DNA from: Styela clava
Lineage: Eukaryota
NCBI RefSeq assembly: GCF_964204865.1
Contig: NC_135251.1
Span: 18,848,001 to 18,912,000 of the forward strand
DNA length: 64,000 nucleotides
Direction of reading: 5' to 3'
Positions 31,767-58,231 of this stretch are shown in pieces (the first letter of the stretch is position 1; each line of letters starts with the position of its first letter). The notes below the pieces were generated by a model, which saw only the letters and a program-made list of their open reading frames with translations, did no database searches and had not been told where the DNA came from. Both the position numbers and the translations under genes were made by a program.

Positions 31767-32114
31767 GGCGAGGCGGTGTGGCTCATCGTGCTAAGCATTA
31801 GGAATCTGGGAACACGCTCGCCATCGCACCTATGATTACTCAGCACTGGTTCGCAAGTTCGACTCCCATGCAGGGATGGCAGGATGGTTATGTGCGAGGG
31901 GGTTGCTTGACTCCTTGCCGCTGTAGGGTGGTTCAAGTAACCGCTGGTCAGTTACGGCTACCTCCATCAATTCCATGCTTCTGAAAACGAATAACTAACG
32001 AATCCCATACCCGACATGGAATGGTAACCGGACGAGACGCAGTGGTTCGCCATATGGTTAAGCCGTCTTATCGCCTTTCCTCTCCCCCGGGATAAATATG
32101 TAAATCCTATCCTA
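31767..32114 (+). mobile_element. tRNA-derived SINE, family A (near full length)
   Basis: A-box-like TGGCTCATCGTGC, B-box-like AGTTCGACTCC, shared body (GGTTCGCCATATGGTTAAGCCG) and ATCCT tail. Confidence 0.85.
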
Positions 32115-32221
32115 CATGAATAAACTGGCACAATGGAATTTATAGTAAAGAGCTGTAAGAGACTGAAAATGATATATATATATATAACTGACATCTGTAC
32201 TGTGAATATTTTTCAGGCATC

Positions 32222-35200
32222 ATGAAGTGCGATTCTTGCTCGCTAGTTCTTCCAACTGCTATAAAGTTGTTTGAACACATACAGCAATCATGTTTACTTT
32301 TCTACAAAAGTCATCCAGCCAGTTGGGCAAAAATTTTGTCATCACTTGATTCTGATGAAAGCACTAGCACTGAATCCAAAGCAGTTGCAGGTAAGCAGAG
32401 TTCAATTTATGTCTTGCAATATCAGTAGGTAGTAGTAGTAGTTCTTCGATAACAAGATCTCCTTACTGATTCAATGAAATAAACACAATTCGACACAAAA
32501 AATGTGTGCATCTGGCGGCCGGCACATGACCAAACTTCTCTCCCATCCCCATTCTTTGCTAAAGACTCATTAAATGCTACGGAGAAAATTTTTTCCTTCG
32601 ATAAATCGAATTATATTTCTCAAAGGAATCCAATGGTCACGTTTTTTCTAATGACTTATTACAAAGTATCTATGGCCAATGGCATATTTAAAAAGCAGCT
32701 GGTCCATTTTAAACCATCCTTGAAGCCTTCCCTGACCTTGAAAGCTTTCAATTCCTTCTTCGCATTTCCATAGCCCAGATGAACTTCTAAAGGCGTTTGT
32801 CGTAGAGCATTGTATGCACACAAATTGTTTATTATTTGATTGTAAAGTCGGGAATGCCTATTGGCTTACTAGATTGCACTTTTTTTAGAATGTTATCTCT
32901 TGGCCAAAATTTCTGTTTAATTATAGTTCCTCATCGTCTATTGGCTTACTAGATTGCACTTTTTCAGAATGTTACCTCTTGGCTAAAATTTCTGTTTAAT
33001 TATAGTTCCTCATCCTCCACAAATGGATGCCACATCAACTACTAAATCCAGCTCACCATCACCTTCAAGTTCATCGACAAATAGTACTGGAACTCCCAAT
33101 TCTATTCAGAAAAAAACTAAATGTAAGTTTCTTGTTACAGCTACATATCAATATTTAATTTAAAAATTCAACATATTTAGTTTGCACACAATTGCCATAT
33201 ATATTTCATTTATTATTCATTTCTCATATTTATGAAATCTTTAGTACCTCAAACTCACAGCAGTAAGATGGTGATGTTGCATGCTCCAAAAACTGTGAAC
33301 ACCATTGATATACCATACATTTGTAAGTGTGAAACTTCATTCAAATCGCTGGAACAATTTCGCGAGCATTTGAAAGGTAGGTTATGATTGCTGAAATTAA
33401 GGTAGTGATATTACACTTCATATTTAGTATCTGAATTCTGTTTTTTTTTTTAGTATGTACACTTGGAAAAGAACCTCCGTTCTGTATAATGTTTAAGGGG
33501 CAAGATAATGAAATGCTAAGGCCACTGAAAAATGTGCACATGACAGTTTCCGATTACTTCTATGGCATTGTGGATGAAAAAACGTAAGTTAAATGAACTT
33601 TGAAATGTCAAATCATTGAATCAACACAAATGGTATCACTGTCTAGTTTCCTATTTTACTTACTTTTACACTTGCATTCAAATCTTATCAAGGTTATTTG
33701 ATCCACAGGGTGAAACTTAAAACAGTTAATCGTCGATGCAATTGCTATAGCTGTGGAAAGACATTGCGTAACAACATCAGGTATATACTTTTCTGTTTTA
33801 TATTCCAAAATTTAAACAAAAGTATTGGCGTTTCATGATCGTTAATAAAAATTCATTCAATTTCACTGGTCGCTTTGCTTAGTATTTTTCAGTCATGTTT
33901 AAACTTTATTTATGTCAAAACGGGAGCTTGAAAATCCGCCTACATTCTTTTTATTCATCCTGTTTTCGCAGCATTGGATTAAATTTTTTATATAACTTGA
34001 ACACATTGTTATGAAAGCTATGAAAAATTTAGTCATTAGTAATTGTACCATAATTCACGTCAACTTCCATTCATTGAAATGGATAAAGCCGACACCAGAT
34101 GTCATCAGTTAAACAAGATATTACCAATTTTCACTTATTTACTTAATGCTTTTTTACTAATTATTCAAATTACTTGAAATTACTTTAGATTTATGAGCCA
34201 TCTTCGACATAAAATTATCAATGAATGGGAAAAGAAATCTCCGGCATCTGATATAGTTGTTTGTCAGCATTGTTACAGGCATTACGACTCACCTTTTCAA
34301 TTGCAATGTCATGTTGAAAATGTTCATGGATCTCTTCCAGCTGCATGTTAGTTTTTTTCCATCTTGGTTGCTATGGTTGGTACTGGCCTCGTAAATATTA
34401 TGTGAAGGTAATTCAAGCTGGCCAATGTTGTCTCAGTAAATTGTCTACAGACTCTTAGCAATCTGGATATATGGCTGCCATTCCAGCTTGTAAAATTGAT
34501 GATCTATGCTCACTCATTTGAGTAAAATATATTTAAATTAGGAATGCAATATTTTGTGTCTCAAATGTGCACCTTATTGAGTACATACAATGTACTACTT
34601 GCACCACATGCTCCATTTTTCCCACTTGTACCTAAAACATTTGCCCTACTTACACCATTATCATCATTTGCACTACTTGAAACATACTGTACCATAGACC
34701 CTGTACTGTTTCATCACTTGCTCAATATAGCACTCGCACCACATACAGATAAACCGTGTGTTGTAAGTTGTACAGGGACACGATTACAGAGTAGTGCAAG
34801 CGTGGCGAGTGGTGAGTGTTTCGAGATGTATAAATGGTGCAATCGCATTGCAAATGGGAAAACTGACCCTAGTGGTGCAATGGATGCAGATGCTAAGCTG
34901 GAGGTGGTGAATTTGGTACAAATGGTGCTGTTTACTAGCACTTGAGTCACACTGATAAACTATATAATTTATTTCTTATCTCTTTATCAGATGTTTATTT
35001 CGAATCTGCACTATACCATACTGTGACATAGATCGGCCTTCAGAGTTTCTTCTAATGTTTAACGAACGTCTACACATAATACTCAATCAAACATGTATCT
35101 TTTTATAGGTTCATGCAGAATCTGTGAACTTCACTTTGTATCAGAAAGGACATTCCTTTTTCATATGAAAGATAAACATGTTCACAACGAATTGCCATAT

Positions 35201-38200
35201 GTTTGTAAAGTCTGTATGTATCGATCTTCTCACTACAGTGATGTGATTAAACATTTCAGGTATGCTATGTTGTTGATAAAACAATGGATATTTGGATAAA
35301 TTTGTGTTGATATAAAATTATAAAATCAAAACTCATTTAGCTTTTCAACAAGTTAATTATTATGTTGACATCTATTGTCACTGAATCTATACTGCTGGTA
35401 ATGTATTGGTTTTCATGTGGAACATAAATAGTAATGGCAATTAAACAATTACTTTTACATAGATAAGACAAGATCAATTTGCTGCTTTAGGTTTATTGAT
35501 AATTTTATATCAACAACTTTATTATTATTTTATCATCTTTTTGGTTCATTCAGTGTGTATTACCCATTTTCTGCTTTTTTATGCTTATTGAAAATTTTAT
35601 ACCAAAATATTTATTTATTTTTTTGTCATCCTGGCTCTTTCATTGTATATTTCCTATTGGGGAGTGGATGAGGAGTATGATGAGAATAATTTTTAAAGTA
35701 AAGGTTTGCAACCTGTGATTCCAGTATCTTTATGCCCATTTTTCTAACCACTCGTAATAGCAATAATACTTTCATCTTTAATTATGATCTACTATATCAG
35801 TTTAAACATAACAAAACAATTTTCATTTGCAGGGATGCTCACACAGATACTACAGCCCTGATGTGTCCGTTCTGTTTGACTGTCTCCTACAATGCCAATT
35901 ACTTCCTGAAGCATGTTATTCAGCATATCGTAAGTCATTGTTTCTGTAAATTACATAGAAAAATAACATAGAATGTCAGTTCACTGATGACTGGTTCGTT
36001 TTCAGAAATCCTCAGCTGATTGTTACCGGTGTCGCCTTAAGTTTGTCAATATCAAGGATCGATCTTTTCATATACAGACTGATCACCAGTCACAGACTAT
36101 AAAAGAAAAGGCAAAGAAATTTAAGAATCTAAACAAGTGCCAGGTTCGTTAAATATTGCTCAGCTTGGATGGCCACCGCATCTCTGCTTACCCTGCGTAG
36201 GTTCGCAGGTTCGAATCCCATGCGGGGATGGTTATGTGCGAGAGGATTGCTGTACTCCTTGCCGCAAAAAAGTGGTTCATGTGACCACTGGTCAGTTACG
36301 GCTTCCTCCACCATCAAGTTGATGCTTCCGAAAACAAATAACTGGCGGACTAATCCCATACCCGACCTGGACTGGTAACCGGACGGGACGCCGTGGTTCG
36401 CCATATGATTGAGCAGTCTTATCCTATCCTAATGTGCTTTTTATTATTAGTGATTTTTGAATTTATTTACACGATTTCATTTCGAATATTTTTTAGGTTT
36501 ACGTCAGAGTTTCTCCATTACAACTCGCACATCGACAAAATTTATTGAATAAAACAAAAATGTTGAAAGATCAGATTGAATCTAATTCAAGTGGGGATTC
36601 TAGTCAAAGTGGGTATTAATTAAGATTTGTAAAATCCTATTTTCCTATCCTTTCTGAAGTTTGATAACCGGAAATGTTATATTACAATGATATATATTAT
36701 CTGCAGCAGCATAACAACATCATACTTCATTATTATTAATGAAAGTGGGATTGAAATTAACTTCATTAGGTTTGCGAAACAAATCTTATATAATGCTCAT
36801 TTCTTGATAATTTTTAGTGGTGTTTTTCTTTGTACAAACAATGCTCGCATCTGCAGAGTTTTGAGTCTATCTATTGTACGACTCTCACAACTACCAGCAC
36901 CTTGAGTTATGTTGCGATCCGCTCCATATTTTTCCTACACATGTAATAAAGTTTACAGTATTTTACAAGGGAGTTGTGTGCTACTGATAGTCGCCCCTGC
37001 AAAACGAAATTCTGCAGTTAAGTTTGATTTGTTTATTGTAATTTATCTTATACAGAACCGATATTCTCGATCTCATTGCTACCCAAAAAGCAAAATATTG
37101 AAGTAGCAGGTGCTTTGACTGGATCATCAGTTGAAACAGGATCACCAGTTGCAAAGAAGACGTCTTCCATTCCAAATGTTCAATTGCCTGCTTATCTCAG
37201 CCCTCTGAAACGGCCGACAAGAATAAAAAAACTCAGGTAAATTGTTTAATACTATCAAATTGCTAAGCTATCTTTTCTTACCAATATCAAACAATTTTGG
37301 CAATGTATTGGATAAAACTCCAGCCAACATGATTTCTGTACATCCCCAATGATTTAAATTTTTTCATGTGCAATAGAAAATATGTGAAAAAACAGTTGAT
37401 TTGGTGTTGGACAAATGTTGAGATGAATATTGACGCAATCATTTTTCAATTTTCCTTGATTACTTGAAATCAACTAAACCTTGTTTTCTGTGTGACTGAC
37501 GGATGGCAAATTCTAAAAATGATGGATTTTAAATAATTTCTAAAATCATTTACTTACTGTAATTTCCGGCCATAAGTCGATTTTCTGGACCCAATTGTTT
37601 GGTTAAATTTTCTGAGCTCTGCTTATTGGGTAACCTTTTATCAATTTTGGACTGGAAAAGGGTGACGATAATGTGCCCTTTTTGTCAGTTTCATGGATTG
37701 GCTTTCTCACACTGTGAATCTGAAATATCTCCGCTGTGCCTATTTGAACTGACAAAAATGACTAACAGGGAAAAAAGTTTCACAATTTTCGAACTTGCCT
37801 ATTGGGAGTTAAAATATGGAAAAGCCATCATTTTTAGTGCTAAAAATTCACTTTTCACTTATCCGCTGAGTCAGATGACTCATTAGCCAGGAAATAGGGT
37901 ACTTTATTGAACATAACATTTTTCACATAGTTGAATATTGGATTTATATTTGAACATATAAAAATTTATATTTTTACGTTCATTTTACATTTCTGCCTGT
38001 ATTTTTATTCAACAGAATGACACCGAGGGAATTTTCTGTTATCAGATGTCATGAATGCCAAGATTCTATTACAATCGAAACTGATCTTCTAAAACATTTC
38101 AGTCATTATCATGAGTGCAGATGGTGTGTTTATGTAACTGCATGTGAAAAAGCCTCACATAATCATGTTCTCAAGTAAGTTAAGTTTTCGTTTGGTTTGC

Positions 38201-41200
38201 CTGATTTTTAATTTCTTAATTATAGTTATATCGGTTTTTATTGTAGTATTTTGACTGTTTTGGTATGATATTGATAATCACTCTTCTCAAATATATATAA
38301 TGTAACCTAATATGTTGATACAAAAGTTTCCTTGAATGACAGCCAAGTGCTTAGCGGCGCCAAATTATCACAGAAAAAACTCACGGCGCACTTGCACGGA
38401 AAAAATGAAGCTTTTCAAATAAAACTCAATTTTGGTATTGCTAATGTGTACTTTACGCATTATAAAGTTTTTAAACACAGAGGCATAAGGAATAAAGGCA
38501 AATTGTCAACTCTTCTTCCTCATCTCTGCTTGATTTTCATTTGAAATGCTAGAAAAATCACCCACATTTGCTAAACTCGGTTCAGTAGATATATGAACTG
38601 CAGCTCGCAAAATTGCACCAAGTAGACACTACGTAACAGGAAGTAAACGACATAGAAAAGATAAATAAATTTATTGATTTATATACACAGCATTTAAAAT
38701 AAGAAACAAAAAAACATTCATAATAAATACAATATCTAAAATATTCTGTTAATAATTGCGGCGCACCTATCAACTCGTCACGGCGCACTAACGCGACATG
38801 ACGTATCCTTTAGGAACCGCTGGCTTAGTAGATTCTATACAATGTGTCAAATGGCTTTAAAGTTGATCGCTATTTGCAGGTTTGAATGTCTTTTTTCATA
38901 TCCATTTGATTTCACCTATTGGAAATGGTAATATAAATCCCATGGAATGATTAGTAATTTTTTATGCTTTTATCAGAGAACATGCTGATGCTGAAATGCG
39001 AGAAGAACTCACTGGAAGAGTTGAAAAACCCGAGTCTCCAATACTTTCATCTGCTATGGTAGATGAAGAAGAGCAGCCTACACCGCAGGTTAAGAAGGAG
39101 CCCACCATTGAGGTGACCATCAAATATAGTAGTCAATTATGACTTTTTTCACGCTTTTCGCGCGAAACCTTTTCCTTCAAAAAGTCCGGGAGTCTTTTCA
39201 GTTCGAATTAGTCTTACACGCTCGGTGAGCTGACTGAGGGGGCATGGGATTTGGACCAAAGATGTCTAATCTGCGATTTTACTGCCAAACAATCGCGCCA
39301 TGCAAAGCTCTGAGTTCATATTGTTTTGGTGACTATCATCTGATTTCTATATTTTCATTTTAACAAGGTTCCCGATAAGCAATTGCTACCACCAACAGCA
39401 GAAGCTACAGAGGAAGAAACAACTAAATCAACGCTTGTTAATAAGAGGTAAGATGCATCTTCTTTGTAGTGTAGTTGAAAGCCTTTAGCATATATTCCTG
39501 ATAGTCGTTCCACTCAAAGCAGGCATTTTGTCAGCAGGCTGGTTTTTTGTGGTTTTAACATCAAATCCATCAAGTCAAGTTTATTATATCTTGATTCTTG
39601 AGTCAGTACAGCGGTTGAATTCATAACATTGTGCTGCCAACAGCAACAACATAGGTCAGTGCTTTTTACCTTGGGATCCGCAGAAGTTCTTCCAGTCCAG
39701 TCCAGAGGTTTCGCAAGTTTCCATTCAAATCTGAGAGTCAATTTTCACATACGTGCACTTGAAGAGCATAAGAGTTTGTTTATATATATATATATTGATA
39801 GTTCACACAATTCTCACAAATAAATATTGTGAAGGGAAGGGGTTTTTCAAGCTTCTGAAGGTTCCGCTCCAATCAAAGCGGTTGAAAACCTCTGTAATAG
39901 GTCAAAGTGTAAAATTACATCAGCACATAGTGTTGGAGATTACTTTTGTGTAAGAAGTATTTCATATATATAGTATTCAATATATCCACTAATCAAATAT
40001 TTATAAGAAAACAATCCCAGGTAAAGCTGGAATTTTAGTAGTTTCATTTGCCAATTTGTTCAAGGTCTAGTAAATGGTAGCCACTAGGTGTAGCTGTAAC
40101 TTCATAGATTTCATGTACTTTCCTAGTCAAGAAATAATCAAATCTTTCAATGCAGTTTTCACAAATTATATTTTTGGGAGTCTATTTGTAAAACCACAAA
40201 CCTTTTGAAAAAGGATGGTTTGGTTTTGTATTGTGTTGTTGTGTATACCGATTAATTTCCAATGCCATAGTTGTTAGTAAATTTGCCTATTCAACTAGTC
40301 ATTGCATATTATAGATCAGGGATGTCCAACCCGCGGCCCACAGGAAAAATTCGGGCGGCCCACTGGAAGAATTCGGGCGGCCCACTTGAAGTTTTTTTCA
40401 TAAATACGGACATATAAACATAATTAACATAAAAATTCCCTGGTATGATAACAAATCTTACTAGAATTTAGGCTCTAATTTCACGCGACTCCGCCATCAG
40501 AAAAGCGTTGTTTAGCGCCACAGAACATGATTTTACAGCGGGCTCAAGCGTGCAACATCTGTGTCGACACAATGAGTTTTCTACCCATTGTGAAGTCATT
40601 AAGGTTGAAGTCACATACCGGTACTGTGTTCTATCGATGTTGTATCACGAAGACAAATCCACCAGTATGTCTGGAAAATAGATGGAGCTTAAGGATGCAA
40701 ATCGGAAATATCAAAAGGATTGGGAAGAGTTGTAAGCAACGATGGATACCTAATGTGCCATAAATCTGTTTCGAGCTTGAAGTCGTATAATTTGAAAATT
40801 ATGAAGTTGAAGCATAGGAGTATTCGGAGGAACGAAAATTTGACAAGCCGGTTAGTTACATTGTGTGGTATCAAAACTATCCGTTGATATTAAACAGTTG
40901 AGCAATGACAATCAAAAGCAAGTTTCGAACTAGTTGAAGAGAAAGATTGCTAATTTTATTTTTTTTTACACCAATGTATGTGCATTTTGCATAAAATTTG
41001 AGTTGAATATCATGGTCTTTGTGTGCATCTTGTGTTCAGAAATCCGCAAGTATGTTGTTGTTGTGCAATATTGGCGTTTGATTTAGCGACGCTCAAATTC
41101 TAACGTAAATCGGAATTGGGTTGCTATTTAAGTTTGGTAAAAACGTTTGCGGCCTGCAATGAATTTCCCCATGTGAAAGTGGCCTGCGACACTAAAACAG

Positions 41201-44200: not shown

Positions 44201-47200
44201 TTTTGAAGATCGAAGAATTTTGCAATGTTGCCTTTTTTAATAGAATATATATATAATGTCAGGCACTAGTACAAGTCATGAAACTTAAATAGTATGTGAA
44301 CAAGTGCATGAAATAAAAACAAAGCTTTATTCGATGAATATCAATGTCTTGATATAACATCAAACTGAAACTGTATTTTAAAATGAACTACACTCTTCCA
44401 ATATTGAAATTTAGAAGTCTAATATTAAAATTTGGAATGCTTCATAAAGACATGCTACCCTGCAAGGCATTTCTCAAATAATACTAAATATTGCATGAAT
44501 TTTCTCTCTTATCATCCACTTTGTATCCACAATGAATGGCAATTTTATTCCCAGATCTGTTTATATACATATGCTCGTCCATCTTCATAAAGTCATATCA
44601 AGTTATTAGAAATTTGCGTAAGATGACATCGTTGTCAACATTTATCCAAAATTCAGTAAACATGTTTCTATCTACCGTGAGATAAAATTTATGTTTCGCT
44701 CACACATACACATATTGACGTCCTTTTGTCACTATAATCCAGGTGTTTATCATGTCACAATAGCATTTATTATCGAGTCACCATCACACTATCCACCTTC
44801 TTATATTTCTCCAACTCATATTGAACAAACAATGCCCTCCCCTTTGTAATAATGACAAGTTATGTCACCGACTTTATTACCCTTGCCACAGAGTTCTTAA
44901 TTAAGCTCCTGAATATGTAAACATTACCAGGCCAATAAGCTTTGTAACCACAACTCATAAATCACAATTTATTGAGAAACACATGTTACATGCTATGGAA
45001 TGTGTTTGATCACAATTTACAATGACAGATATTGAGACTCGTGAACATGTCATTGTTTTATAACAGCAAATAAGTTTTAAATAATTTGTTATTTTATTAT
45101 TTGAGGGGGGGGGGGGAGAATATGTTCTAAATTTGGCCCCACTCAACATAGGACAAGATATGTTCATTGAGAATTGGTAAAGTTCTCATACTTATTTTTA
45201 AATTATTCCGGACATTGAATATAAATAATTTAAAATTGATTTAAATCAGTTTTGAACAACCCTGATATTTTGCTTTCCAACCTTTTGATTTTATAAATAC
45301 CAAAATAATATTATGTTACTTGCAAATAATACTAAAATCCTGCATTTCGATCACATTTTGCAATACTAAAAAAAGAAGCAATGGTGCTCACTTTCCATTG
45401 GCTATAGATTTGTAGTTTTACAATGACATTATTTTCAAATGTTATCCCAAGATGACAATTTTGAACATTGCTATAGATTGCATTTGAATGATGCACTTAT
45501 TTTAGGGTTCATATTCATGGATATACAATTATAACAGTTTGTAAAGTTTACAGAATTTGGTGAGGCAAGACTCTCTCTACATTACAGCTTAGTATTTTCA
45601 ACAGTATCAATTTCATGTGTAAAGTTATGTTTGACGTTTCTCAGACACCAGATCTTTGTTTTAAAAACAAACTAAATACTGCTTTCCGCTTCTATATTAC
45701 AATAAATAGTCAAGTAGGTTTATTCATAATTTCTTAACAATCTTAAAATGATATTTTTGATTACGTATTAGCATTGTTCAATGTAATTTGATACTGTTGA
45801 AATGGTGTTGTCTGTATTAGCGATGATGTCCTGAATTTTTATATTTGGTTGTTTCTCCTGTGTTTTCCATTCAATTTCCTGTGACTGTTCAGATTATTGT
45901 ACGTCAGAGCTTGTTTAATACTTTTCAAATGAATAATTCCTATTTGAAAAATGCTGTAAAATCACTGTCATTTTTGGTGAATTAAATTTTGTTGACAAGT
46001 CTATGAAGAATCATCAGCTAATATTATGAATATCAAGTTACTTACGGTATTTCTCCTGTGTTTCCCATTCGATTTCTATCAGTTGTTTAGATTATATATT
46101 ACATCAGAACTTGATTTATAGTTTCCAAATGAATAAATCATAATAAAAAATGCTGTAAATCACTGTCTCATTTTTAGTTATTTAATCTTAGTCACAAGTC
46201 AATGAATCTTCCAATATTACTGATATTAATAATACACATACTGTTGATCTAGCTTCCTATTTAATAACAAAGTTCTTCAATGACCCCAACGTTGACAGTT
46301 AGTGTAAATATGCTGTAACATCATGTCTGGTAATTTGATAAATAGTTCAAATATTTGTTATGATCTGTTTCCCAGAATCTTCATGTATTACGTTATAAAG
46401 TTGTGTTTAACATAAATTGGTTATGGCAGTGGTGTCTATCTAAGTATAGGTATAGCTTATGCTTGATATAATTGTATTAGTTAGGAGTGCTCAAATATAT
46501 TGTAACATCTTTAAACTTTATGATATTGTATAAACTGATCACACAGATGAACCATTGTTGGGCAACATGTTTGCTTATCAATAAAATGAATTATTCCAAT
46601 AATGATCATGTTTGTTATATAAAGCTACCCGGGACAAAATGGTTATTATTGCAAGCTTCGAACTCTGACATAATTTCAGGTTTATATTCATTTGATAAAA
46701 ATAAGTCACAGTATTTCTGTAGCTGGTTTGATAACCATAAACATTCTTAAAGCCTTTCCAACCCATGATAATAAAAATAATTCATTTCTTTGTCTCAAAC
46801 AATTATTGAACACAGTGATCTTTTATTTGGAATAGTCTAATTCAACATTTCCCAATTTCCTAACCTGGAGGTATGTTGTTGTTCTTAGGGAAGAATTTGC
46901 TATGTATTTGCTGTGGTATTACTAATATTCTCTTATTATTTATCATTACTAAATTCCTGTTTACGCACACATTATGCAAACATTATGAACTACTTGAACT
47001 CGAGAAAGGGGGAGTGCGCAATTTGCGCAAAACACTAGCTAAGGTTCTATGAAAGATTGGACAAATAATTGGACAAACTTGATCTATAGAATATATTTCA
47101 CCTCGCAACCTTCATTTTTCAGTGCTGATACTTCAAAAGCCCGCCGCAAGCAATCAAACCCAATGAAAATTAAGAATAGTGGTAAGACCATCTATGTCTT

Positions 47201-50200
47201 TACTTAGAGTAAAAAAGATTTTTTTCTCATATGCCTAAAATGGAGCCAAGTAACCAAATGATCGCTTCAGACTAGTTGTTTATATAATAGCGGGTGTGGT
47301 CTATCTTTTCAAATTTTTGATTTTATATTAGGATATGTAGAGCTTGAAATTTTATTTCAATTTAGTTTGTGTTTTTTTTATACTTTCCTTTAGATTTTCC
47401 AAATTCTCCTTCGCCGAAAAGAGTCAGAAAAGACAGAAAAGTTCAAACAAAAACCTTTGAAAAACAAAGAGGAAGTCAGACCTTCGAAAGTGATTTTGCT
47501 GGTGCTGATGCAGAAGAAAATTCAAACTCTACCTCAGTGCAAAAAGGACGCAGGTTGTTTAATTTTCAATATGAAGGGTGTTCAGTTTTGATTCCAGGGA
47601 TACAAAATATTTTTACATTTTGATTGTTTTGAAGCACTGAGATGGCACACAACCTGAACATAGTATGTGTACCAGGTTAGGGTTCAGACTGTACGTTATC
47701 TTGGTGCACATACTTCGGGAGCGCCTAATCTGCTTTCAACGCTTTAACCACTAGGCCATCAAGCCAAACTGACCAACTTGAGCCCCAAATCTTGCCCCAA
47801 TCAGCATTTTCTGGAGGATAATGTATTTCCATATCTATATAGTTTCGGTAGTCCATGGTATTACACTGGTTGCCTCAGTCTCTTTTGCTTCTGAATGTGT
47901 GTAACGTTGCTTTAAGTAAGAAGGATGTGCAAGCGCTCAGACGTCTCTCAAACTTTGCATTTATGAAACAATACTTTTTTTGTTTTCAGTACTCCTGCCC
48001 GCAGTATTCTGAGTGAGGATGGGGTTAAAATAGGAAAACGAACAAGTACTTTCACTCCTGCTGTAAGAAAAAGAAAAATCTTAGCACCTGAAGGTTTTTT
48101 CCCGGACATAGAAGATGATGCTGGTAGGTAGAGCAAATTTGTAAAATATCGCCCACAATGCAAAAGGACCAAAACTCAATATTTCACTGCTCTGAATATA
48201 CTGTGAAATATTGTTTACAAAAATAGAATATTGAATGTATTCTGAGATGGTAATTGGTAATCATTGGACACAAACTAAATGTGACCCATGATGGCATAGC
48301 AGGTTAAAATCTCTGGCTCATATCCCATGCTCACGACCTCACTCACCCAGGCTGTAATAAACTAGGTAGGCAACGCCGAATCAAAAAGATTTTGGTCATT
48401 CCAAACTAGAGTGTCTCCTTATCTAGTAATAGGAGCTTCTGTCTTGTTCAGAGTATAAATAAGTTGATAGAAAAATATTACAAATTATGTTTGCTAATGC
48501 GTAATGTTTGAGATAGACATTGTTTTGATCAATATTCCATTTTTTAAAATGTAAGCAATAAAAGTAAGTTTATTTTTTGTCTGGCCCTCATATGTCAAAT
48601 GCTCGGCATGGCAAATTTTCAAATGAAAAATTTTATTGATTGTGAATATACGATATCGAATATGATCAATTTCGAAAGTACTTGAGTATTGAATTTTGTT
48701 TCAGACATACCTAGCTTTGTAAAAACTATCTTAAAGGTAAAAGATCATAAATAAAACGATGATAAAATGGGTTATGATATATATGTAGTAGTTGTAATCT
48801 TGGTTATGATATCGCTAATGGTCAATCCTATTCTACTAATACTACAAACTTATTTTTTCAATACAAATTTTCTCAAAACAAGGCCCCGGTCTAGTTTGAA
48901 AAAATTTCTTTAATATTGCAAGTTACCTTGTTACACTTAATTAGCAATTCACAATATTCTCTCTGTTTAGGTTGGGCCAAATACTTTAAAGAATGCGAGG
49001 ATAAAACTCAATCGGATAGTTCTTTCAATATAAAAGTTACAGTACCAATGTCCGCACTTCCTACAATGGTGCCTATTCAAACAACTGTTAACACACAACT
49101 GAAGTCTTCCAATTCTTCTATCCTGACATTTCGTAAGTAAATGTGTTTTAGTTAACACTTCTGATTTGAAACCAGTGGTTTTATCAGGAAGCCATGTGGC
49201 TGCAAAATAGTTTATTTGTCTTTTATTGCCTGAATTGTATTAAATATGAATATATAAATATAAAACCAAACCTATTACTGGCATAATGAAGTGTTCGGTA
49301 ATGTGTATCAATTTTAATAAAACTGGCAAGCCTATGGCTATTTTATTTGAATAAAACAATATAACGTACATTGATATGCACTCTTGAATTTGAATTGAAA
49401 CTTTCGAACTCCAGTTGGAAACTACTAATTTAAATGCTTGCATACAAATGAACCATCAGTATCGCTACCGTTCACTTACATTTCGTGTATTTTATTTTTC
49501 ATTGTTATTTCAAAGATTGTGGTCTGTGCTTCAGGATTAATTTTTGGGGTTTGTACCAGTAATTAGATAAAAATGTCCACGATCCATTGTCCAAGAAACA
49601 TGTTTAACAGAACTTCTACCAAATTAAACTTCCAATAAGCTGTGTCACCAAAACTTACCCTATACGAAACGTTTTTCAGTCATCAGAGCGAGAGGTTTTT
49701 CCATGAATTTGAGTTATGTAGAATTTGGCACCTCATTTCTCTTTTCATGATGGTATTGACTTGAAATGATTATTCTATTATTCACTATCATATATATATA
49801 TTTTTTTCTGAGCGAGTGTGCATGACCTTGCCACAAGGACATTCTCTCAAAATATCTCAATATCATCTTTTTGTCAATTCAGAGAAAAAGCTTCCAACTA
49901 CAATTGCTACCCCGGGACTGAAAAATGTGGCATCTGATGAACAAGGTGCTAGTCCAATCGCTGGTCTTTCTACAGTTGTCCGAAAAGTTAATTCTGATAC
50001 GGCTGCAATTTCTCCTGGCAATGTTGTTATAAGTAAAACCAAGCTTGCGACAAATTCTAATAACAAACCAGTCTATCAATTTCATATTGTACCTAAAAGT
50101 CAAAAGAATAAGCCAACACCGAGTAAGTTTATATACAATAAGTACCTTATGTATTCACATTTTACGGCTAATAAGCCAAGGTAACTTTTTAGCACCGAAA

Positions 50201-53200
50201 TAAGGGTTTTTCTATATTACCATCCAGTGAGCCGACTGCCGAGGCAGAAAATTTGTGATACGGTTTTCTCTGATTGTCAGTTAAGCACCAATTCTTGGTC
50301 TATCTTTATCAGTTCTATTTTCCTTGGTGAAGCGTCAATGAGCTTCTCCGTCTTTGACGTGTTTACAGTACACGTGCCAAGCGCATTTTTTTCATGGGTT
50401 GCACACTTGACGATATTGTTAATTGCTTTTGCTCATGATGCACGCACAAATACGGCAACATCAAATATAGTAGCAGCAGAGATATTCCAGATTCACACTA
50501 TGAAAATGCCAATTCATGAAACAAACTGAAAAGGCAAATTGTTGTCCCCCTTTTTTATTATATTCTGGTTCAAAGCTAATAAATAGTAACCCCAGAAAAA
50601 TCAAATAAGCTTACCCACTAAATCCGGCCAAAAATCGGGGGTTCAAAAATTGACCTATTAGCCTGAAAATACAGTATATATATATGTTGTTTTGTCCTTC
50701 GTACAAACAGTTTTGCATAGTTCATCCTTACCCCTCTTTTTCTACCCAACATCTGGAAAGCACTTTGCCTACCTATCTATCTAAGTGAATGTACCTCTTG
50801 TTTTATCCTTTTGTTCCTTTACTTTACCCGTTATCCTTTTTATCCTTAAGTTTTGTCCAACATTTAAATAAGGGGGCGCATGCCCCATATTTGTGTGTTA
50901 GGCCATCATGGACTTGTGAAAATTTAAATTAAATTTAACTATTTAATGTTCTTATTTTGGGTTATTTGTATGTATTTTTGTAACAATTTTTAATACATCT
51001 AATTTTTTTTTTATAATTTCTATTTCAGTTGCTCCAAAGCACAATCCATCTTCCACCCAGCCACTGTTTGGTTTAATAAATAAAGTTCAAAGCATGTTAT
51101 CTCAAGGTAACTTATATACATGTTACCTATGTTTGTGTCACAGAATTGAGAGGTTCAAGGAAATAAAGCACAAGATTACCTTTTTCTTAAGTGATTGTCA
51201 TCGGTGCACCTAGCTGGCTAATTTCCTTTTGTTTCTTTATAATGATAAGATGATTTTTTTTTGCCGAAGTATACTTGTGAGCTTTCTTTAGAATACAGTT
51301 TTATGTCCCAAGATTATTAGAGGTTCAAGGTGATAACTAAAGAAAGGTCAAATGAAATCTTTCAAATATACTTGCTATTTTATTGAAAGAGATTATGTTA
51401 TTCTTGTATAATATCTCATTCAAGTATCTTTGTAGCAATTGCTACAAACACATTTGAAATGGAAAGTAAAAACAAGAAGAGAGCAGTTTATTAATTAATA
51501 CACAATATACTAGTATTATCTACCCCCCCCCCCCCCCCCTAAAAATAAATAAATAAAGAATTGGCGGTGCTCTACCATACACTTGTATGTAGTGGTAAAT
51601 GGGTTATTGGGTTATCAAAAAAAAAAGCGTGCCAAAGTTTCATCAAACAAATGACAACTTAATTATTTGGATAAAATGCATTCATTCATAGCAGCAAAAT
51701 GTTGTCTTACTCTATAGCAGCCTATATTTTCGGTAATATACATTTTGCTATTGCTTTGGTATTTTGCTATTTATATTATGCATATATTCGGCTGGAAAGC
51801 ACTGTTCTAATACTTTCATATCTTTATTTCTAGTACCACGAACACCAGTAGATCTAAGATGTCTAGAAGTGACTCACTCTACTTTACTAGTACAGTGGGA
51901 TGCTCCGATAAACTGTGTTGTAACTCATTACAAAGTTGTTTTCCAAGGTAAGATTTCAATTTCTGTTTTTGAAAGGATAGATATTTATATTTTAAGTTTT
52001 TATATTATGGGTTATTACCAAATACATTCTTTTTAGGTGCCGGGGCCCCAACAGTTCAACTTCTGCCACCCGAGCAAACTCTTGTCAGACTTGTTGGATT
52101 GAAGTCAGATACTATGTATGTCGTTCGTGTCTACACACTTTACAACCAATCTGTCAGCCAATATGCTTTCTTGTATCAAAAAACAAGTAAGTTTTGGATT
52201 TTGGATTGATATATTGCGACTTGAAGTGCGAATAACTAAAATTCTGTCATGAATTTTTATTGAGTTAAATAATATATGGTAACAAATTTTATGGAGATTT
52301 CTCTCAAAGAAAATTCACACACACTCACTTCAAAGAAAATAAGGCTTATCTCTGAACATATTATATACGACCAGCCGACCACTGAAAGGCTACTTAAAAC
52401 TAGTTCCAATTATGGTGGTGGATTATGCGCTAGCAAATCCAAATTGACATAATACTTGGAGCAGTTGATATCAATACGATCAGAAAAACAATCATAATGA
52501 GGTGAACTAAACTATTGGGTCTGGATACAAATCTGACTAATCAGCCTGCTGGTATATCTGAACAACATGACTACTCAAGTTAAGTGCATTCAGAGTTCTT
52601 CATGCCATATGACTAGGGCTGTCCAAAATCGAATATTTTTTTGATTCGAATCGAACCGAATATTTTTCTCACATCGAACCGAATAATCGAATATTATTGC
52701 GCAATCCTCCTAACTTTGTCTCTAATGTACAATAAAAACTTCCTCTCCAATATTGTGATAACTAATGTGCAGTTATATCTAAATTATTGCAAATATTTTG
52801 CATAACTATGTTTTCAGAGTTATAAAAGGAGATCACAAGCTTCCTTGAACTGGTCAAAAAATTAGTTTTGAAAACTATCAAGTGTTAAGAGTTGGAAATT
52901 GCACAGACTCTTTGAATGCCCTTAGTTTGATGACATTATTAGTTGATGACCATATTGTTGCTGTACAACAGCCATCAACTCACAAGAGTGCAATTATTTG
53001 CCATTATTAGTAGTAAATGAATGATACAAAGTGTTGCCATTGGAAGAAATTACACATTCTTTTGAAAAAAGGGTATTGGACCTCCAAAACGTGTTTCAGT
53101 CTTGTACCATGTTCCTATGATTACTAACTCAGCTTCTACAACTCCCTGTTCCTGCGTCAGTAACTGTGGCGTCAGTAACTGTGGCGCCATCAGAATTTGG

Positions 53201-55909
53201 TGGCGATTCTATTTATAGAACTGGCATTTTTGCTGATACTAAATTTGCCTTTTTCTTCTTGCGTTCTCTCAAAAAACGTCATCTTTAAATCATTGTTACT
53301 GTTATTCATTGTAAACTTTTTTCATTTATGACCATGCATGAAATGGATAATTACATGTCACCGGGCAATAGGAGAAACTTTTTTACAGCAAAGAAAGCGA
53401 TAGAAACATGTTTTTGCTTGTCCCGTGTAAAACGTGGTGCAAAGGTGGTCGTGAGGCGCATTATGCACCAAATTTTAGCGATTCATAAATTGGCCGAAAA
53501 ACGCTTTTAATAATTTGCGATTCGATTTCCAATATTCGGTTGGCTTGGACAGCCCTCCATATGACTAATTTTGTCACCAGAATTACTTAACATCACTATA
53601 ATATTTGAATGTAATATAGAACACAGGCTGTGTAAAACATTGTGTAAAATTATTCATTGCTTTCTCCATTTTTAGATAAGCTTCGTGATAGCACAACTAA
53701 ACCAGTAGATGATGTTGTTCTTGTGCTTGATGACAATGAACCATTAAATACACTACATGGTACGATGCCTACATCTAAAAAAGAAACGGCAACAACTAAA
53801 AATAACAATGGTGCTGCTAAGACCACAACAACTGTAGAGAAATCTTTTGTACCAGCGACAACATCAGTCTCTTCGCTGACATCTACCAGCCATAATTCGA
53901 TAACCACTGATCAACAACAGGCTTTGAAAAAACAGCTGCAAGACGAATCTGAGAAAAAAAAGGTTATTAATGAATTGCTCGCCGGTTTCAAGAAAAATAA
54001 ATATCAAAAAAATAAAACGGTAAAATCGAATATAGGCTTGAGCGCTGCCACTGAGACTGCTGGGAAGGAAACATGTATCGGGAAAGACAATCGACCATTT
54101 GAGCAGGCTGATGCCAAAGCAGTGACTGATGAATTGAAAGCAGATGTTGATAACGAGGTGCTCTCAAATGCACCTGCCTCTCCTGAAGTAACCATAGTGG
54201 CAACATCGACAATAGGATGTGTCACTGGCAATAGCAAACTAATGAACAAAACGGAGGACCAGATCAATATTGTTAAAGTTATTCCAGCAAGTAACCTAGC
54301 AAGCACTGACAAAAGAGAAGAGATGCATGTGTTAATTGATTCACTAAACAATGGTTCGATCATATCAACTAAGGAAAATAATGCTGAGAAATCAATGAAA
54401 AGTCCTGATGAAATTAAAGACTCTACTGCAGTATCTGAAGATGAGAACAATATTGTTAAAATTATTCCAGCACGTAACCAAGCATGCACTGACAAAAGAG
54501 AAGAGGTGCATGTGTTAACTGATCCACTAAACAATGGTTCGATCACATCAACAGTGGAAAATAATGCTGAGAATAAAACGGAATCTCTCGATGAAATTAA
54601 AGATGTTGTGGTAGTTGGTGAACTACCACATACTTTATTATCTGATGATCAGATCAATATTGTTAAAATTATTCCAGCAAGTAATCAAGCACCGACTGTT
54701 GGAAGAAAAGAGGTGCATGTGATAACTGATTCGCCAAACGTTGTATCGACCATGCCAGCAGCGGAGAAAGAAACTGGAACTCTTGATGAAATTAAAGATG
54801 TTGATGAACTACCGTATACTGCAGTATCTGATGATCAGATCAATATCGTTAAAATTTTTCCAGCGAATAACCAAGCATTTACTGTCGAAACTGAAGAGGT
54901 GCAGGTGATATCCGATACACAAAACGATGGCTCAATCATTTCAACAGTGGAAAATAATGCAGGCAATAAAATGGAAACCCCTAATGAAAATAAAGATATG
55001 AATGAACAACCACATACTGCAATATCTGATAATGCCATTACCTTAACTTTGCATCCAAACAGCAATGTCTCGAAAAATGCGATAGAAATTTGCGATGAAG
55101 CCGATCCAGAGTCAATTGAGACATCTGATCTTCCTACAAATCCAGTTTCTTGTGAGACCCCTAATTCTGATGAAACTGAAGAAATTAGCAGTAACAATGT
55201 CAAAGATGACAAAGAAAACATGCAGCCACAGACTGACGATTGCGACTTGGGATTTAATATTGTAAATATTGTTAGCTTGAGTAATCAGTCGAAAGTCGAA
55301 ACTAACACAACAAACTATGGTGGTGATGAATTAGTGGCAACTGAAAGGAGTGATACAGGATCTGTGAATATTTCGCAAGAGGATATTTTACCCAAAACAT
55401 CATCATTACTTTCCACAAATTTGGAAGCGTCAAACAATGAAAAGGTAAATAATCAGGATAAAAAAGCAGGAGGCTTGAATGCTAATGATATGATGGAACT
55501 TGATGACTGTTCGACAAATTCTGAACTGAAAGACGAGAACATAAGTTCAAAGTCCCCTACATTTTCATTGCCAATTTCACCAGTACCACCAAGCCTAAAG
55601 GTGCCTTCTACATCGACTTCTGATGAAGACACCACTGAAACAGAAAGAGCTGATGAAGTTGCTGATTGTGAAGACATCATATTGAATCTGGACGACTCCC
55701 CTATTCTACAAACAGAAAATGACAGCACGGATTCGGATAATGAAAATAATCCCGGACCTGATGAAAGGGAGTTGATGATAGAAAAAAATAATGAGAAAGA
55801 TGTGGATGAGGTGCAGTCAATTGTAAATCAACAAACTTCAATTTGTGATTCAACTCCTACACTCGATGACATCAAAGATATCATAAATGAAGATCTGTCA
55901 TGGTTGTAA
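32222..55909 (+). CDS. POGZ/ZNF280-family C2H2 zinc-finger protein with NuRD-binding motif, FN3 domain and acidic repeat tail (about 1720 aa); no pogo transposase domain
   Basis: Exons: 32222-32390, 33006-33122, 33245-33376, 33454-33583, 33709-33780, 34189-34346, 35109-35259, 35833-35929, 36006-36143, 36497-36608, 37056-37236, 38016-38174, 38977-39112, 39368-39447, 47123-47181, 47394-47553, 47990-48123, 48971-49132, 49883-50122, 51029-51106, 51834-51947, 52037-52186, 53676-55909. Total 5163 nt, open frame. POGZ/ZNF280 signature peptides: [115 protein letters not shown]...[17 protein letters not shown]. The join across the 7.7-kb intron is inferred from matching phase 2. Confidence 0.85.
32858..33014 (+). 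repeat. 79-80 bp tandem duplication spanning a splice acceptor
   Basis: CTATTGGCTTACTAGATTGCACTTTT...TTTAATTATAG|TTCCTCATC occurs twice, giving acceptors before 32927 and before 33006. Confidence 0.9.
34565..34935. repeat. Degenerate foldback-like element built from short repeats in inverted arms
   Basis: The left arm is rich in (CTT)GCAC(CA/TA) and the right arm in TGGTGCAA/AGTGCAA, with a sharp C/T to G/A strand-skew switch near 34750. Confidence 0.55.
36169..36431 (+). mobile_element. SINE family A copy, 5' truncated
   Basis: GGTTCGAATCC B box, shared body and ATCCTATCCT tail. Confidence 0.8.
37557..37899. mobile_element. Tc1/mariner-pogo-like MITE
   Basis: TA|CTGTAATTTCCGGCCATAAG ... 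TTAGCCAGGAAATAGGG|TA; a related inverted copy lies at 50154-50674. Confidence 0.55.
38338..38822. mobile_element. Degenerate hAT-like MITE
   Basis: CGGCGCA(C) subterminal motifs clustered at both ends; right terminus TTAGGAACCGCTG. Confidence 0.5.
40317..41213. mobile_element. hAT (Charlie/Buster-like) non-autonomous element, 897 bp
   Basis: TIRs CAGGGATGTCCAAC / GTTGGACATGCCTG; 8-bp TSD TTATAGAT; duplicated GGCGGCCCACT subterminal motif. Confidence 0.9.
42613..43486 (-). CDS. Putative nested antisense small gene (2 coding exons, 75 aa, unknown function)
   Basis: Exon 43494-43382 (TTCAG| ... GAG|GTAAG, ATG at 43486) joins in phase 0 to exon 42735-42613 (strong T-tract TAAG| acceptor, TGA stop). 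Possible UTR exon at 43759-43682. Confidence 0.35.
45852..46230. repeat. Diverged tandem duplication, period about 198 bp
   Basis: Blocks TTTCTCCTGTGTTT.CCATTC, CAAATGAATAA, AAAATGCTGTAAA(A)TCACTGTC and ACAAGTC.ATGAA are each present twice. Confidence 0.75.
47630..47726. mobile_element. Partial copy of the Merlin-like MITE
   Basis: GATGGCACACAACCTGAACATAGTATGTGTACCAGGTTAGGG ... GCACATACTTCGGGAGCGCC. Confidence 0.65.
48288..48430 (+). mobile_element. SINE-like family B copy (others at about 4240-4330, 6335-6400, 11070-11185, 23370-23466, 39215-39300, 41803-41930)
   Basis: Shared GCAGGTTAAA..TCT..G.TC(A/C)AATCCCATGC.CA...CCTCAC.CA..TGTAATAAA...GGCAA...CCGAA.CA motif in either orientation. Confidence 0.55.
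50154..50674. mobile_element. Tc1/mariner-pogo-like MITE
   Basis: Ends ATTTTACGGCTAATAAG ... CTATTAGCCTGAAAATACAG|TA; shares TTTTAG(C/T)(A/G)C and TCCA(G)TGAG blocks with 37557-37899. Confidence 0.55.
51834..52186 (+). other. Fibronectin type III domain (two exons) within the zinc-finger gene
   Basis: [38 protein letters not shown]|[42 protein letters not shown] carries the FN3 consensus P..L, conserved W, Y.V and L.GL.P/S.T.Y.V.V. Flanking and internal introns are all phase 1. Confidence 0.85.
52614..53557. mobile_element. hAT (Ac-like, TAGGG ends) non-autonomous element, 944 bp
   Basis: TAGGGCTGTCCAA ... TTGGACAGCCCTC; 8-bp TSD CATATGAC; TCGAAT/TCGAACCGAAT subterminal repeats. Confidence 0.88.
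54257..55030 (+). repeat. Four in-frame coding tandem repeats (periods 183, 207 and 186 nt) in the terminal exon
   Basis: Units begin at about 54257, 54440, 54647 and 54833 with D(Q/E)(I/N)NIVK(V/I)(I/F)PA.N.A....EE(V/M)(H/Q)V(L/I).D; clear nucleotide-level similarity between units. Confidence 0.9.
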
Positions 55910-57139: not shown

Positions 57140-58068
57140 TCAATAAATAACTTTATCACATAGTTCATTTGTTAAATCATAAGTAACTCCTTTCCAAACA
57201 AATTTACTAGGTAACTCAACAGTCTGTCCATCACTCAGTGATGTGATTTTCACTGAATCGTCGAATACGAACCCAGAACTAATATCAATAGCAAGTGAAG
57301 ACTTGATCAAACCTATTCCACCATACCTATCATGACAAATATGGTAAACTCGACCAGTGTGGGGCAGCATGCACAAAGTTGTAGGCTCAAAAGGCAAAGT
57401 TAGTTTATCTCCAGCACCACCATAAGAAAGTAGGTATTGTACTCCCCCAGAATCCAGTTCAGTCTTCTCTATAATATGGGTATAAACAATTGGGTAGTCA
57501 TCACATCTGAAATGAAAATAAAAGTATGACAACACACCTAAAAAGAGGAAAGACCTGGTGATATTGATGAAAACAAATTCTCACACCGGTGTCAACTGTA
57601 TTATAGTAAGACATCAATAGCATCTCACTGACCAACTTGGTGAGCTTATCGTAAAATGATAAGTCATTTTTGTAAAAGTAAGAAGAGGTAACAAATAGGT
57701 AATTCAATACTGTTTATGTACCTTATAAAATTTCTCTCTCTCCCACACAGTGATAAATAAGGAAATGAGTCCTGGTATCGACCAGTCACATTCCCTTTTA
57801 TTCGCCTGAAGAAAAATTCCAAAAAAGGTTTGTCTTTGAAACATGTGATAAAATTTTTCACTTTAGTATCATCAAGAAATAATTGACCTTGATGATCAAT
57901 ATAATAAAAGTATTCTCTTATATTTTTTTCTGCATATTGTCCTTGTGTGTACGCTTTGTTTGCTGCAGCATTTGACGAGTAATTGCATCTTATAGCTCCG
58001 ATTACTGTCAGCTTTCTTATCAAATTTTTGAAACACTGACTAGAATAATTTGTAAGACAAGAAACCAT
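57140..58068 (-). CDS. C8orf82: UPF0598 protein C8orf82 homologue (DUF4505), 2 coding exons 58068-57722 and 57506-57140
   Basis: Conserved YTQGQ....REYFYYIDHQGQLFLDDTKVKNFITCFKD.PFLEFFF and FPYLSLCGRERNFIR|CDDYPIVYTH, plus GRVYH and GIGLIKSSLA. Phase-2 GT-AG intron. The basic N-terminus resembles a mitochondrial presequence. Confidence 0.93.
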
Positions 58069-58231
58069 TTTAAAGTTCACATCACTTTATGCTATCAGAG
58101 AAATATATTATGAATAAAAAATACATTTACTAACAACGAAAGTGAAAAATTGCTTTGAAGAATAATGCACCAATGTGAAATTTGATAAATCTCAAGATAA
58201 ATGTTATTCTCGGTAAGTATGAGGGAACATA

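Follow-up and report, generated by a model that had tools for sequence, protein, structure and literature searches.

The sole ascidian gene of the POGZ/ZNF280 family of zinc-finger proteins combines a conserved finger array with a fibronectin type III domain and a candidate NuRD-docking motif

Results and discussion

Gene structure and annotation

Analysis of a 64,000-nucleotide (nt) stretch of the Styela clava genome (contig NC_135251.1, hereafter the window) focused on a gene of the POGZ/ZNF280 zinc-finger family. Positions 32222–55909 of the + strand are the coding span of one expressed 23-exon gene, with the start ATG at 32222 and the stop codon at 55907–55909 according to spliced-protein mapping. 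The span agrees residue for residue with RefSeq LOC120335338 of Styela clava, an ‘uncharacterized protein’ of 1720 amino acids (aa). Mapping of this protein, P0002 (XP_039258766.2, 1720 aa), onto the window placed 1715 residues in frame plus five split codons, and all 22 of 22 junctions had a single GT..AG solution reproducing it. Among these are the junctions 39447->47123, which spans an intron of 7675 nt in phase 2, and 52186->53676 in phase 1. An initial annotation, made from the sequence alone, had placed the coding start, the stop and both of these junctions correctly; its exon model recovered the span but lacked the exons at 33454–33583, 33709–33780, 36497–36608, 37056–37236 and 51029–51106. 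Before splicing, the + strand between 32217 and 55909 presents many short finger-like or FN3-like open stretches and a 753-codon open stretch at its end. An upstream exon of the 5′ untranslated region is implied because the ATG lies only 5 nt past the acceptor at 32217.

When the last exon (743 aa) was compared with 1.84 billion representative proteins, it returned one protein, P0001 (1738 aa, 98% identical), and no distant relatives. The P0001 cluster consists of three RefSeq proteins of Styela clava LOC120335338, each labelled ‘uncharacterized protein’. The gene is therefore annotated already, yet uncharacterised, and its domain layout is a novel version within a known family. The name ‘zinc finger protein 36’ presumably derives from a catalogue of zinc-finger expression in Ciona. 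An ascidian POGZ/ZNF280-type finger protein with an FN3 domain was not found in CC-licensed PMC papers or bioRxiv, and the terms POGZ, ZNF280, fibronectin and fn3 do not occur in the main text of a Styela transcription-factor catalogue (PMC8122590).

Pfam scans of the window were run on single exons or single open stretches, and the gene’s open stretches other than those described below gave nothing above noise. Rfam had no match within the window. For the whole protein P0001, the Pfam listing held only fn3, zf-POGZ and a sub-threshold DNA_Packaging match (20.2 bits against a cut-off of 25) in a low-complexity linker, which was taken as spurious.

Transcript evidence

Thirteen sequencing runs contain the stretch, and nine of them hold about half of its words, as expected from exons alone. 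Contigs of three RNA-like runs from three studies (X1, X5 and X8) and of one DNA-like run (X10) were aligned to 47050–53049. X10 covered 30 of 30 bins with zero splice joints of the gene; X1, X5 and X8 covered 22, 19 and 21 of 30, with depth 0 in several intronic bins. All seven splice junctions within this region were confirmed by RNA-like contigs. Six GT..AG joints (47180>47393, 48122>48970, 49132>49883, 50122>51029, 51104>51832 and 51945>52035) are carried by X1, X5 and X8 alike and lie within the cut ambiguity of the exon model. The seventh, 47550>47987, is present in X5, and X8 has a 13-letter loose end before 47987 with its unique match at 47538–47550.

In one X5 contig (contig 14, 3989 nt), 47393 falls at letter 1925 and 52191 at letter 2968. 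The contig carries 1866 nt 5′ of exon 15, compared with 1832 nt of coding sequence from the ATG to 39447 (exon-length sum), and a further 1021 nt past 52191, which would end within the tandem repeats of the last exon. On its left side the alignment continues 2 letters beyond the acceptor, as expected from the final AG of exon 14. These lengths are compatible with one mRNA.

Other signals were seen in the same alignments. Low-depth X1 contigs at 50159–50939, in intron 19, are probably unspliced precursor RNA. At about 47450–47850 and 52450–53049, both intronic, summed contig depths in all four runs range from thousands to 186,000, with many loose ends and odd short joints that mark high-copy dispersed repeats. 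At the exonic positions 47135, 51046, 51057, 51075 and 51913 the contigs of all four runs differ from the window letter; because DNA-like and RNA-like runs are alike in this, the differences are ordinary inter-individual polymorphism and not editing.

Zinc-finger array and family membership

The zf-POGZ family (PF25429) matched the open stretch 37954–38175, containing the exon at 38016–38174, at 32.1 bits (cut-off 27), and the same locus at 32 bits in a genome search. This was the only PF25429 match in the whole Styela genome, indicating that the gene is single-copy. Four other open stretches gave weak generic C2H2 matches in Pfam. The Styela protein as query recovered the Ciona protein, followed by vertebrate POGZ and ZNF280C. 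With the Ciona finger array (residues 40–420) as query, 31 of 762 candidates matched at E<=0.001. Four are ascidian (two from Ciona, one from Clavelina and one from Styela), all with PF00041 in the precomputed domain column. The 27 non-tunicate matches were without exception POGZ, ZNF280 or lamprey relatives, with E values from 1e-41 to 1e-59 and none with PF00041; they comprise shark ZNF280D, two lamprey proteins and POGZ of birds, reptiles, a mammal and a fish, and cover 59–96% of the array. A finger-pattern comparison places fingers 1–9 in one-to-one correspondence with the vertebrate relatives, so that the gene keeps nine of the ten colinear POGZ/ZNF280-family fingers in unchanged order. 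The gene is the single ascidian member of this family, in agreement with the initial assignment of its array as POGZ/ZNF280-type.

The tenth, Z280C/D-type finger (PF25414) was not listed for any of the three ascidian proteins P0001, P0004 and P0010, no finger pattern follows the double finger, and the whole Styela genome held zero PF25414 matches at E<=1. The same family scored 32.9–67.2 bits in the jawed-vertebrate proteins scanned and 17.4 and 17.6 bits in the lampreys (cut-off 22). Neither HTH_Tnp_Tc5 (PF03221) nor DDE_1 (PF03184) was listed for P0001 at E<=0.1, both being present in the POGZ protein P0028, and no F.GF motif occurs in the Styela protein. Pfam scans and motif and finger patterns thus bear out the earlier observation that a CENP-B helix-turn-helix, a DDE domain, an FxGF motif and the last finger are all missing.

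ZNF280C, ZNF280D and the lamprey relatives are the top non-tunicate matches (E 7e-59 to 1e-56, 34–35% identity over 90–96% of the array). They share the colinear fingers 1–9, including the zf-POGZ double finger, and like the ascidian protein have no transposase. ZNF280C/D differ from it by a long N-terminal extension and the tenth finger, and ZNF280C/D and the lamprey relatives lack the RRKQxxPxK motif, the FN3 domain and the long acidic tail, all three of which the ascidian protein has. Vertebrate POGZ carries the same array (E about 1e-53 to 1e-56) but, unlike the ascidian protein, has the tenth finger and the HTH_Tnp_Tc5 and DDE_1 domains of a Passer-type pogo transposase. Drosophila ROW, a relative of woc, is described as a POGZ orthologue that has AT-hooks and a Q-rich C-terminus, works together with HP1b/c at active promoters and is also found at borders of topologically associating domains (10.1101/2021.03.08.434270, as available in part). 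Compared by description and not by sequence, the chromatin protein ROW resembles the ascidian one in its many fingers and its lineage-specific back half; it differs in its AT-hooks and Q-rich end, and no AT-hook-like motif occurs in the three ascidian proteins.

Two variable features were noted at the N-terminal end. The exon at 33245–33376, coding for the family’s first finger, is skipped in RefSeq isoform X2. Exon 1 encodes an additional C2HC-type finger (32222–32293), of the same type as the exon-3 finger, in Styela and not in Ciona or Clavelina.

Conserved layout of the back half and the NuRD-type motif

The protein is arranged as nine fingers, a disordered linker with RRKQxxPxK, an FN3 domain, a VxxLDD motif and an acidic tail of 744 aa. 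The layout of fingers, motif and FN3 domain is common to Styela, Ciona and Clavelina and was found in none of the 31 vertebrate relatives fetched. The initial annotation had called the chimeric protein lineage-specific, which holds with respect to these vertebrates, but the layout belongs to three ascidian genera and not to Styela alone. The motif (47142–47168), the FN3 domain (38 bits) and the 744-aa acidic tail do follow the fingers in frame, as it had proposed; the ‘QT motifs’ that it also listed could not be identified.

In an alignment of Styela, Clavelina and two Ciona proteins, only three invariant islands occur outside the fingers: R618 R619 K620 Q621 P624 K626, the FN3 domain, and V991 L994 D995 D996 right after it. 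Six of the 18 invariant columns of the 347-aa linker, 70% of whose residues are disorder-promoting, fall inside the 9-residue motif. RRKQSNPMK fits the NuRD-interaction consensus in its N-terminal form (RRKQxxP) as well as in its internal one (RKxxxPxK/R). The pattern RRKQ..P occurs in 6 of 6 tunicate sequences versus 0 of 31 vertebrate ones, and RK...P.[KR] in 6 of 6 versus 1 of 31, the exception being one bird protein. RRKQxxP is reported as the N-terminal NuRD-interaction motif of FOG-1, SALL1/4, BCL11A and ZNF827; the internal form of ZNF512B binds RBBP4 according to a crystal structure and an alanine scan, requires a basic residue at position 8 and has a listed instance in PHF6 (10.1101/2023.07.31.551264, as available in part). 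RBBP4/7-type loci are present in the Styela genome. Docking of NuRD through RRKQxxPxK is plausible on this sequence evidence. The likeness to FOG-1, SALL1/4, BCL11A, ZNF827, ZNF512B and PHF6 lies in the motif consensus, which the ascidian candidate matches within a zinc-finger protein; no homology extends beyond the motif, and the ascidian copy is internal yet has the full RRKQ form.

FN3 domain

The fn3 family (PF00041) scored 38, 38.8 and 40.6 bits in Styela P0001, Ciona and Clavelina (cut-off 25). The two half-exons alone gave 19.6 bits (stretch 51737–52033) and 17.1 bits (51973–52206). An AlphaFold2 model of the region, built from four sequences, has seven strands over about residues 31–110, with a block-mean predicted local distance difference test (pLDDT) of 86–91. 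Its top Foldseek matches in the PDB were a consensus fibronectin design, sidekick-2, NCAM2, fibronectin and tenascin (E 5e-08), and a PDB sequence profile search returned titin, fibronectin, tenascin and receptor phosphatases among the best 60 of 239 matches. As modelled, the domain is a canonical FN3 domain with a seven-strand fold.

Phase-1 introns lie on both sides of the FN3 exons and between them, an arrangement compatible with exon shuffling; however, the four introns 17/18 to 20/21, immediately ahead of these exons, are in phase 1 as well. Searches for the source of the domain yielded no close relative. A word-based search with the Ciona FN3 region retrieved only two Ciona proteins among 128 candidates and is uninformative because known Styela and Clavelina relatives were missed. 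In a protein atlas only generic FN3 clusters appeared, at 0.79–0.80, a level attained in a third of cases with shuffled proteins. A profile search of the Styela genome itself gave 26 bits for the next best match versus 89.7 and 66.1 bits at the locus.

ATF7IP/MCAF1 is a nuclear co-repressor with an FN3 domain, and the ascidian protein, presumably a nuclear chromatin protein too, likewise carries one FN3 domain. They differ in that the ascidian domain is nearest to fibronectin, titin and tenascin among the matches listed, and is followed by the 744-aa tail instead of standing at the end of the protein. No ATF7IP-type Pfam family was listed for P0001, and no ATF7IP chain was among the 49 Foldseek and 60 PDB-sequence matches listed.

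Acidic tail

The 744-aa Styela tail is disordered and has a net charge of -75. The tail is acidic in all three species (-75, -53 and -39), and its sequence is unconserved among them. Repeats of about 61 aa with an I-N-I-V core occur in the Styela tail and not in that of Ciona or Clavelina. Four copies are present in the window and in P0002, and five in the older RefSeq proteins P0001 and P0003, which reflects either copy-number variation between assemblies or haplotypes or repeats collapsed in one of the assemblies.

Candidate docking motifs were examined and mostly found unsupported. Counts resembling SUMO-interaction motifs (SIMs) in the tails of P0002, P0010, P0004 and P0009 were reached by 82, 52, 472 and 175 of 500 shuffles, and a tail with many SIMs was set aside, the counts not being above shuffles. 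One conserved SIM-like motif was retained, V..LDD after the FN3 domain. Docking of HP1 by PxVxL was rejected, as the species compared have no such motif in common.

Origin of the back half and the transposase question

In a quick tree with a midpoint root only, no outgroup and long tunicate branches, the sequences fell into three clades, one of tunicate proteins (support 100), one of POGZ (99) and one of ZNF280 with the lamprey proteins (91), and the tunicate clade lay outside both others. This topology would fit an ascidian gene that is sister to both vertebrate lineages. POGZ is reported to be a chimera assembled during vertebrate evolution out of a ZNF part and a Passer transposase (PMC7386202, as available in part). 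A vertebrate fusion together with a tunicate clade outside POGZ and ZNF280 implies that the tunicate gene probably never had a transposase, and the nearest vertebrate matches are ZNF280D-type proteins without one. The suggestion that the C-terminus had been rebuilt in place of the pogo transposase is accordingly abandoned.

The tunicate FN3 profile had no match in the 31 vertebrate relatives (best E 0.41). The sequence comparisons point most likely to a back half that was added or kept on the tunicate branch, independent of the vertebrate capture of a pogo-type transposase. Given the AT-hooks and Q-rich end described for ROW, the family seems to combine a conserved finger array with variable ends.

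Proposed mechanism

We hypothesize that the finger array would bring the protein to chromatin, where RRKQxxPxK may dock RBBP4/7 and so recruit NuRD. The protein would then be a repressor that reaches its effector directly and not through the family’s last finger. Other proteins may also dock on the FN3 domain and on the hydrophobic-acidic motif beside it. The last finger is presumably the HP1-binding region (HPZ) of POGZ, an equation taken over from the initial annotation and not drawn from the present analysis. Taken together, we consider it reasonably probable that the sole ascidian POGZ/ZNF280 member, transcribed as one 23-exon mRNA, is a NuRD-recruiting repressor with a tunicate back half. 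That it swapped the last-finger effector route of the family for a NuRD-docking motif and FN3 module is a much more tentative proposal, to which we give only limited credence.

Alternative explanations

Two adjacent genes, one encoding the fingers and one the FN3 domain and acidic tail, might have been mis-fused by prediction; the 7.7-kb intron is far the longest in the gene, and the reads here do not show the joint across it. We consider this extremely improbable, since the halves are joined in three RefSeq models, the parts have the same order within single Ciona and Clavelina proteins, exon 15 has an acceptor but no in-frame ATG of its own ahead of the motif, and the X5 contig continues 1866 nt 5′ of that exon with its alignment passing the acceptor by 2 letters. 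The separate-gene reading, which the initial annotation had named as its own counter-case, is nearly refuted by the RefSeq models, the orthologues and this contig. Scarcely more credible is the form in which the repressor was initially conceived, a co-repressor mimic that docks SUMO by many tail repeats and, in addition, ATF7IP or HP1. The invariant hydrophobic-acidic motif after the FN3 domain and the I-N-I-V cores of the Styela tail repeats would fit it. However, SIM-like counts in the tails were matched by 52 to 472 of 500 shuffles, Ciona and Clavelina lack the repeats, neither an ATF7IP family (Pfam) nor an ATF7IP chain (Foldseek and PDB matches listed) was encountered, and PxVxL is not common between species, so SUMO docking is reduced to one conserved SIM-like motif and ATF7IP or HP1 docking is left without its expected signatures. 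A more serious competitor, though still an unlikely one, is that RRKQxxPxK is merely a nuclear-localisation or other basic signal and that the protein is a ROW-like architectural or activating chromatin factor. The motif lies within a basic linker holding further K/R clusters, known RRKQxxP motifs are mostly N-terminal as far as the source describes them, and fly ROW is reported at active promoters and borders of topologically associating domains. Against this, it is precisely the residues of both consensuses that are invariant, among them the proline and the position-8 basic residue of RKxxxPxK/R, neither of which a plain basic signal would require, and internal motifs of such form are reported to bind RBBP4 in ZNF512B, with one listed for PHF6.

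The back half could also be ancestral to the family and lost in vertebrates, giving way to the last finger and, in POGZ, to the transposase, with tunicates as the conservative lineage. The layout is old, being common to Styela, Ciona and Clavelina; the FN3 domain is strongly diverged, as judged by the gap to the next genome match (26 bits versus 89.7 and 66.1); lamprey relatives carry about 680 aa past the fingers without a Pfam family; and no outgroup was recovered that would set the polarity. We nevertheless hold this history to be doubtful, because the best E of the tunicate FN3 profile in the 31 vertebrate relatives was 0.41 and because ROW, in the available part of its description, is given AT-hooks and a Q-rich C-terminus, an FN3 domain not being named. 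Our preferred interpretation, a one-gene NuRD-recruiting repressor with a tunicate back half, must itself be read with caution, and several observations weigh against it. Whole-protein zf-POGZ scores fall below the cut-off (24.6 bits in Styela P0001, 17 in Ciona and 19.9 in Clavelina). RNA contigs did not directly show the 39447->47123 junction or any of the finger half, the support for that junction being the RefSeq models, two orthologues of the same layout and the length of one RNA contig. The evidence for the NuRD step is a motif of nine residues, and repression is not a given for the family because ROW, as described, acts with HP1b/c at active promoters. The tree is quick and unrooted, with long tunicate branches. 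A non-chordate relative was not found in word-based searches, which are insensitive, one of them having missed relatives already known from Styela and Clavelina; the back half may thus have been gained by tunicates or lost by vertebrates.

Gene features and neighbouring sequences

Table 1 Coding exons and other features of the POGZ/ZNF280-family gene, in window coordinates.
Feature	Position	Strand	Description
Exon 1	32217–32390	+	Acceptor 32217, ATG 32222; aa 1–56, extra C2HC-type finger at aa 3–24
Exon 2	33006–33122	+	Ser/Thr/Pro-rich linker
Exon 3	33245–33376	+	Alternative; family finger 1, aligned to N-terminal finger of Ciona and Clavelina
Exon 4	33454–33583	+	Conserved PFCI...YFYG box ahead of finger 2
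Exon 5	33709–33780	+	Finger 2, first half
Exon 6	34189–34346	+	End of finger 2 and finger 3
Exon 7	35109–35259	+	Fingers 4 and 5
Exon 8	35833–35929	+	Finger 6
Exon 9	36006–36143	+	Finger 7
Exon 10	36497–36608	+	Linker from finger 7 to double finger
Exon 11	37056–37236	+	Linker
Exon 12	38016–38174	+	Fingers 8 and 9, the Pfam zf-POGZ double finger
Exon 13	38977–39112	+	Acidic/proline linker; no tenth finger after it
Exon 14	39368–39447	+	Final exon ahead of the long intron
Intron 14	39448–47122	+	7675 nt, phase 2, GT..AG
Exon 15	47123–47181	+	59 nt; RRKQSNPMK at 47142–47168
Exon 16	47394–47553	+	Basic linker, KRVRK cluster
Exon 17	47990–48123	+	Linker, RKRK cluster
Exon 18	48971–49132	+	Linker
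Exon 19	49883–50122	+	Linker
Exon 20	51029–51106	+	Short pre-FN3 segment, helix predicted at low confidence
Exon 21	51834–51947	+	FN3 first half; phase-1 intron on either side
Exon 22	52037–52186	+	FN3 second half; then phase-1 intron (52186->53676)
Exon 23	53676–55909	+	744-aa acidic tail and stop codon
VVLVLDD	53714–53734	+	Hydrophobic-acidic SIM-like motif; V..LDD invariant in 4 of 4 aligned ascidian sequences
Tandem repeats	54241–54997	+	Four units of about 183 nt (about 61 aa)

Two copies of a dispersed repeat (about 190 nt, 84–89% identity) lie at 31882–32072, about 150 nt upstream of exon 1, and at 36226–36423 in intron 9, with similar translated stretches elsewhere in the window. Just downstream of the gene, 57143–58086 on the - strand holds two exons of a DUF4505 (PF14956) gene (142 and 104 bits). 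A 336-codon open stretch at 60134–61141 (-), with a Mod(r) domain at 95 bits and a weak UEV-like part, looks like a VPS37-type subunit of ESCRT-I in one long exon. Pro/Ser/Gln-rich open stretches at 1186–17711 (-), three pieces of which matched no Pfam family when scanned, look like exons of a large low-complexity gene. At 5223–5591 (+) an open stretch resembling a Spin-doc-type zinc finger scored 26.4 bits, just below the cut-off.

Significance for the POGZ/ZNF280 family

POGZ is a well-studied human neurodevelopmental-disorder gene, and the targets of its array and its relevant effectors are debated. The finding reported here is a modest evolutionary one and not a new kind of system. It corrects the picture of a transposase having been ‘replaced’, adds a case of the full RRKQxxP form used internally, and shows C2H2 fingers joined to a classical FN3 domain, which is rare, within what is presumably a nuclear protein. 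If the proposed exchange of effector routes is true, the array would be a targeting device with exchangeable effector ends (transposase and last finger in POGZ, a Q-rich end in the fly, and a NuRD-interaction motif and FN3 domain in sea squirts), and Ciona, with its one gene, would be a simple system in which to ask what the POGZ finger array recognises. In the sister group of vertebrates the family has one member, with nine fingers kept and a different conserved effector half, and the comparison separates the core of the family, the array, from its lineage-specific parts.

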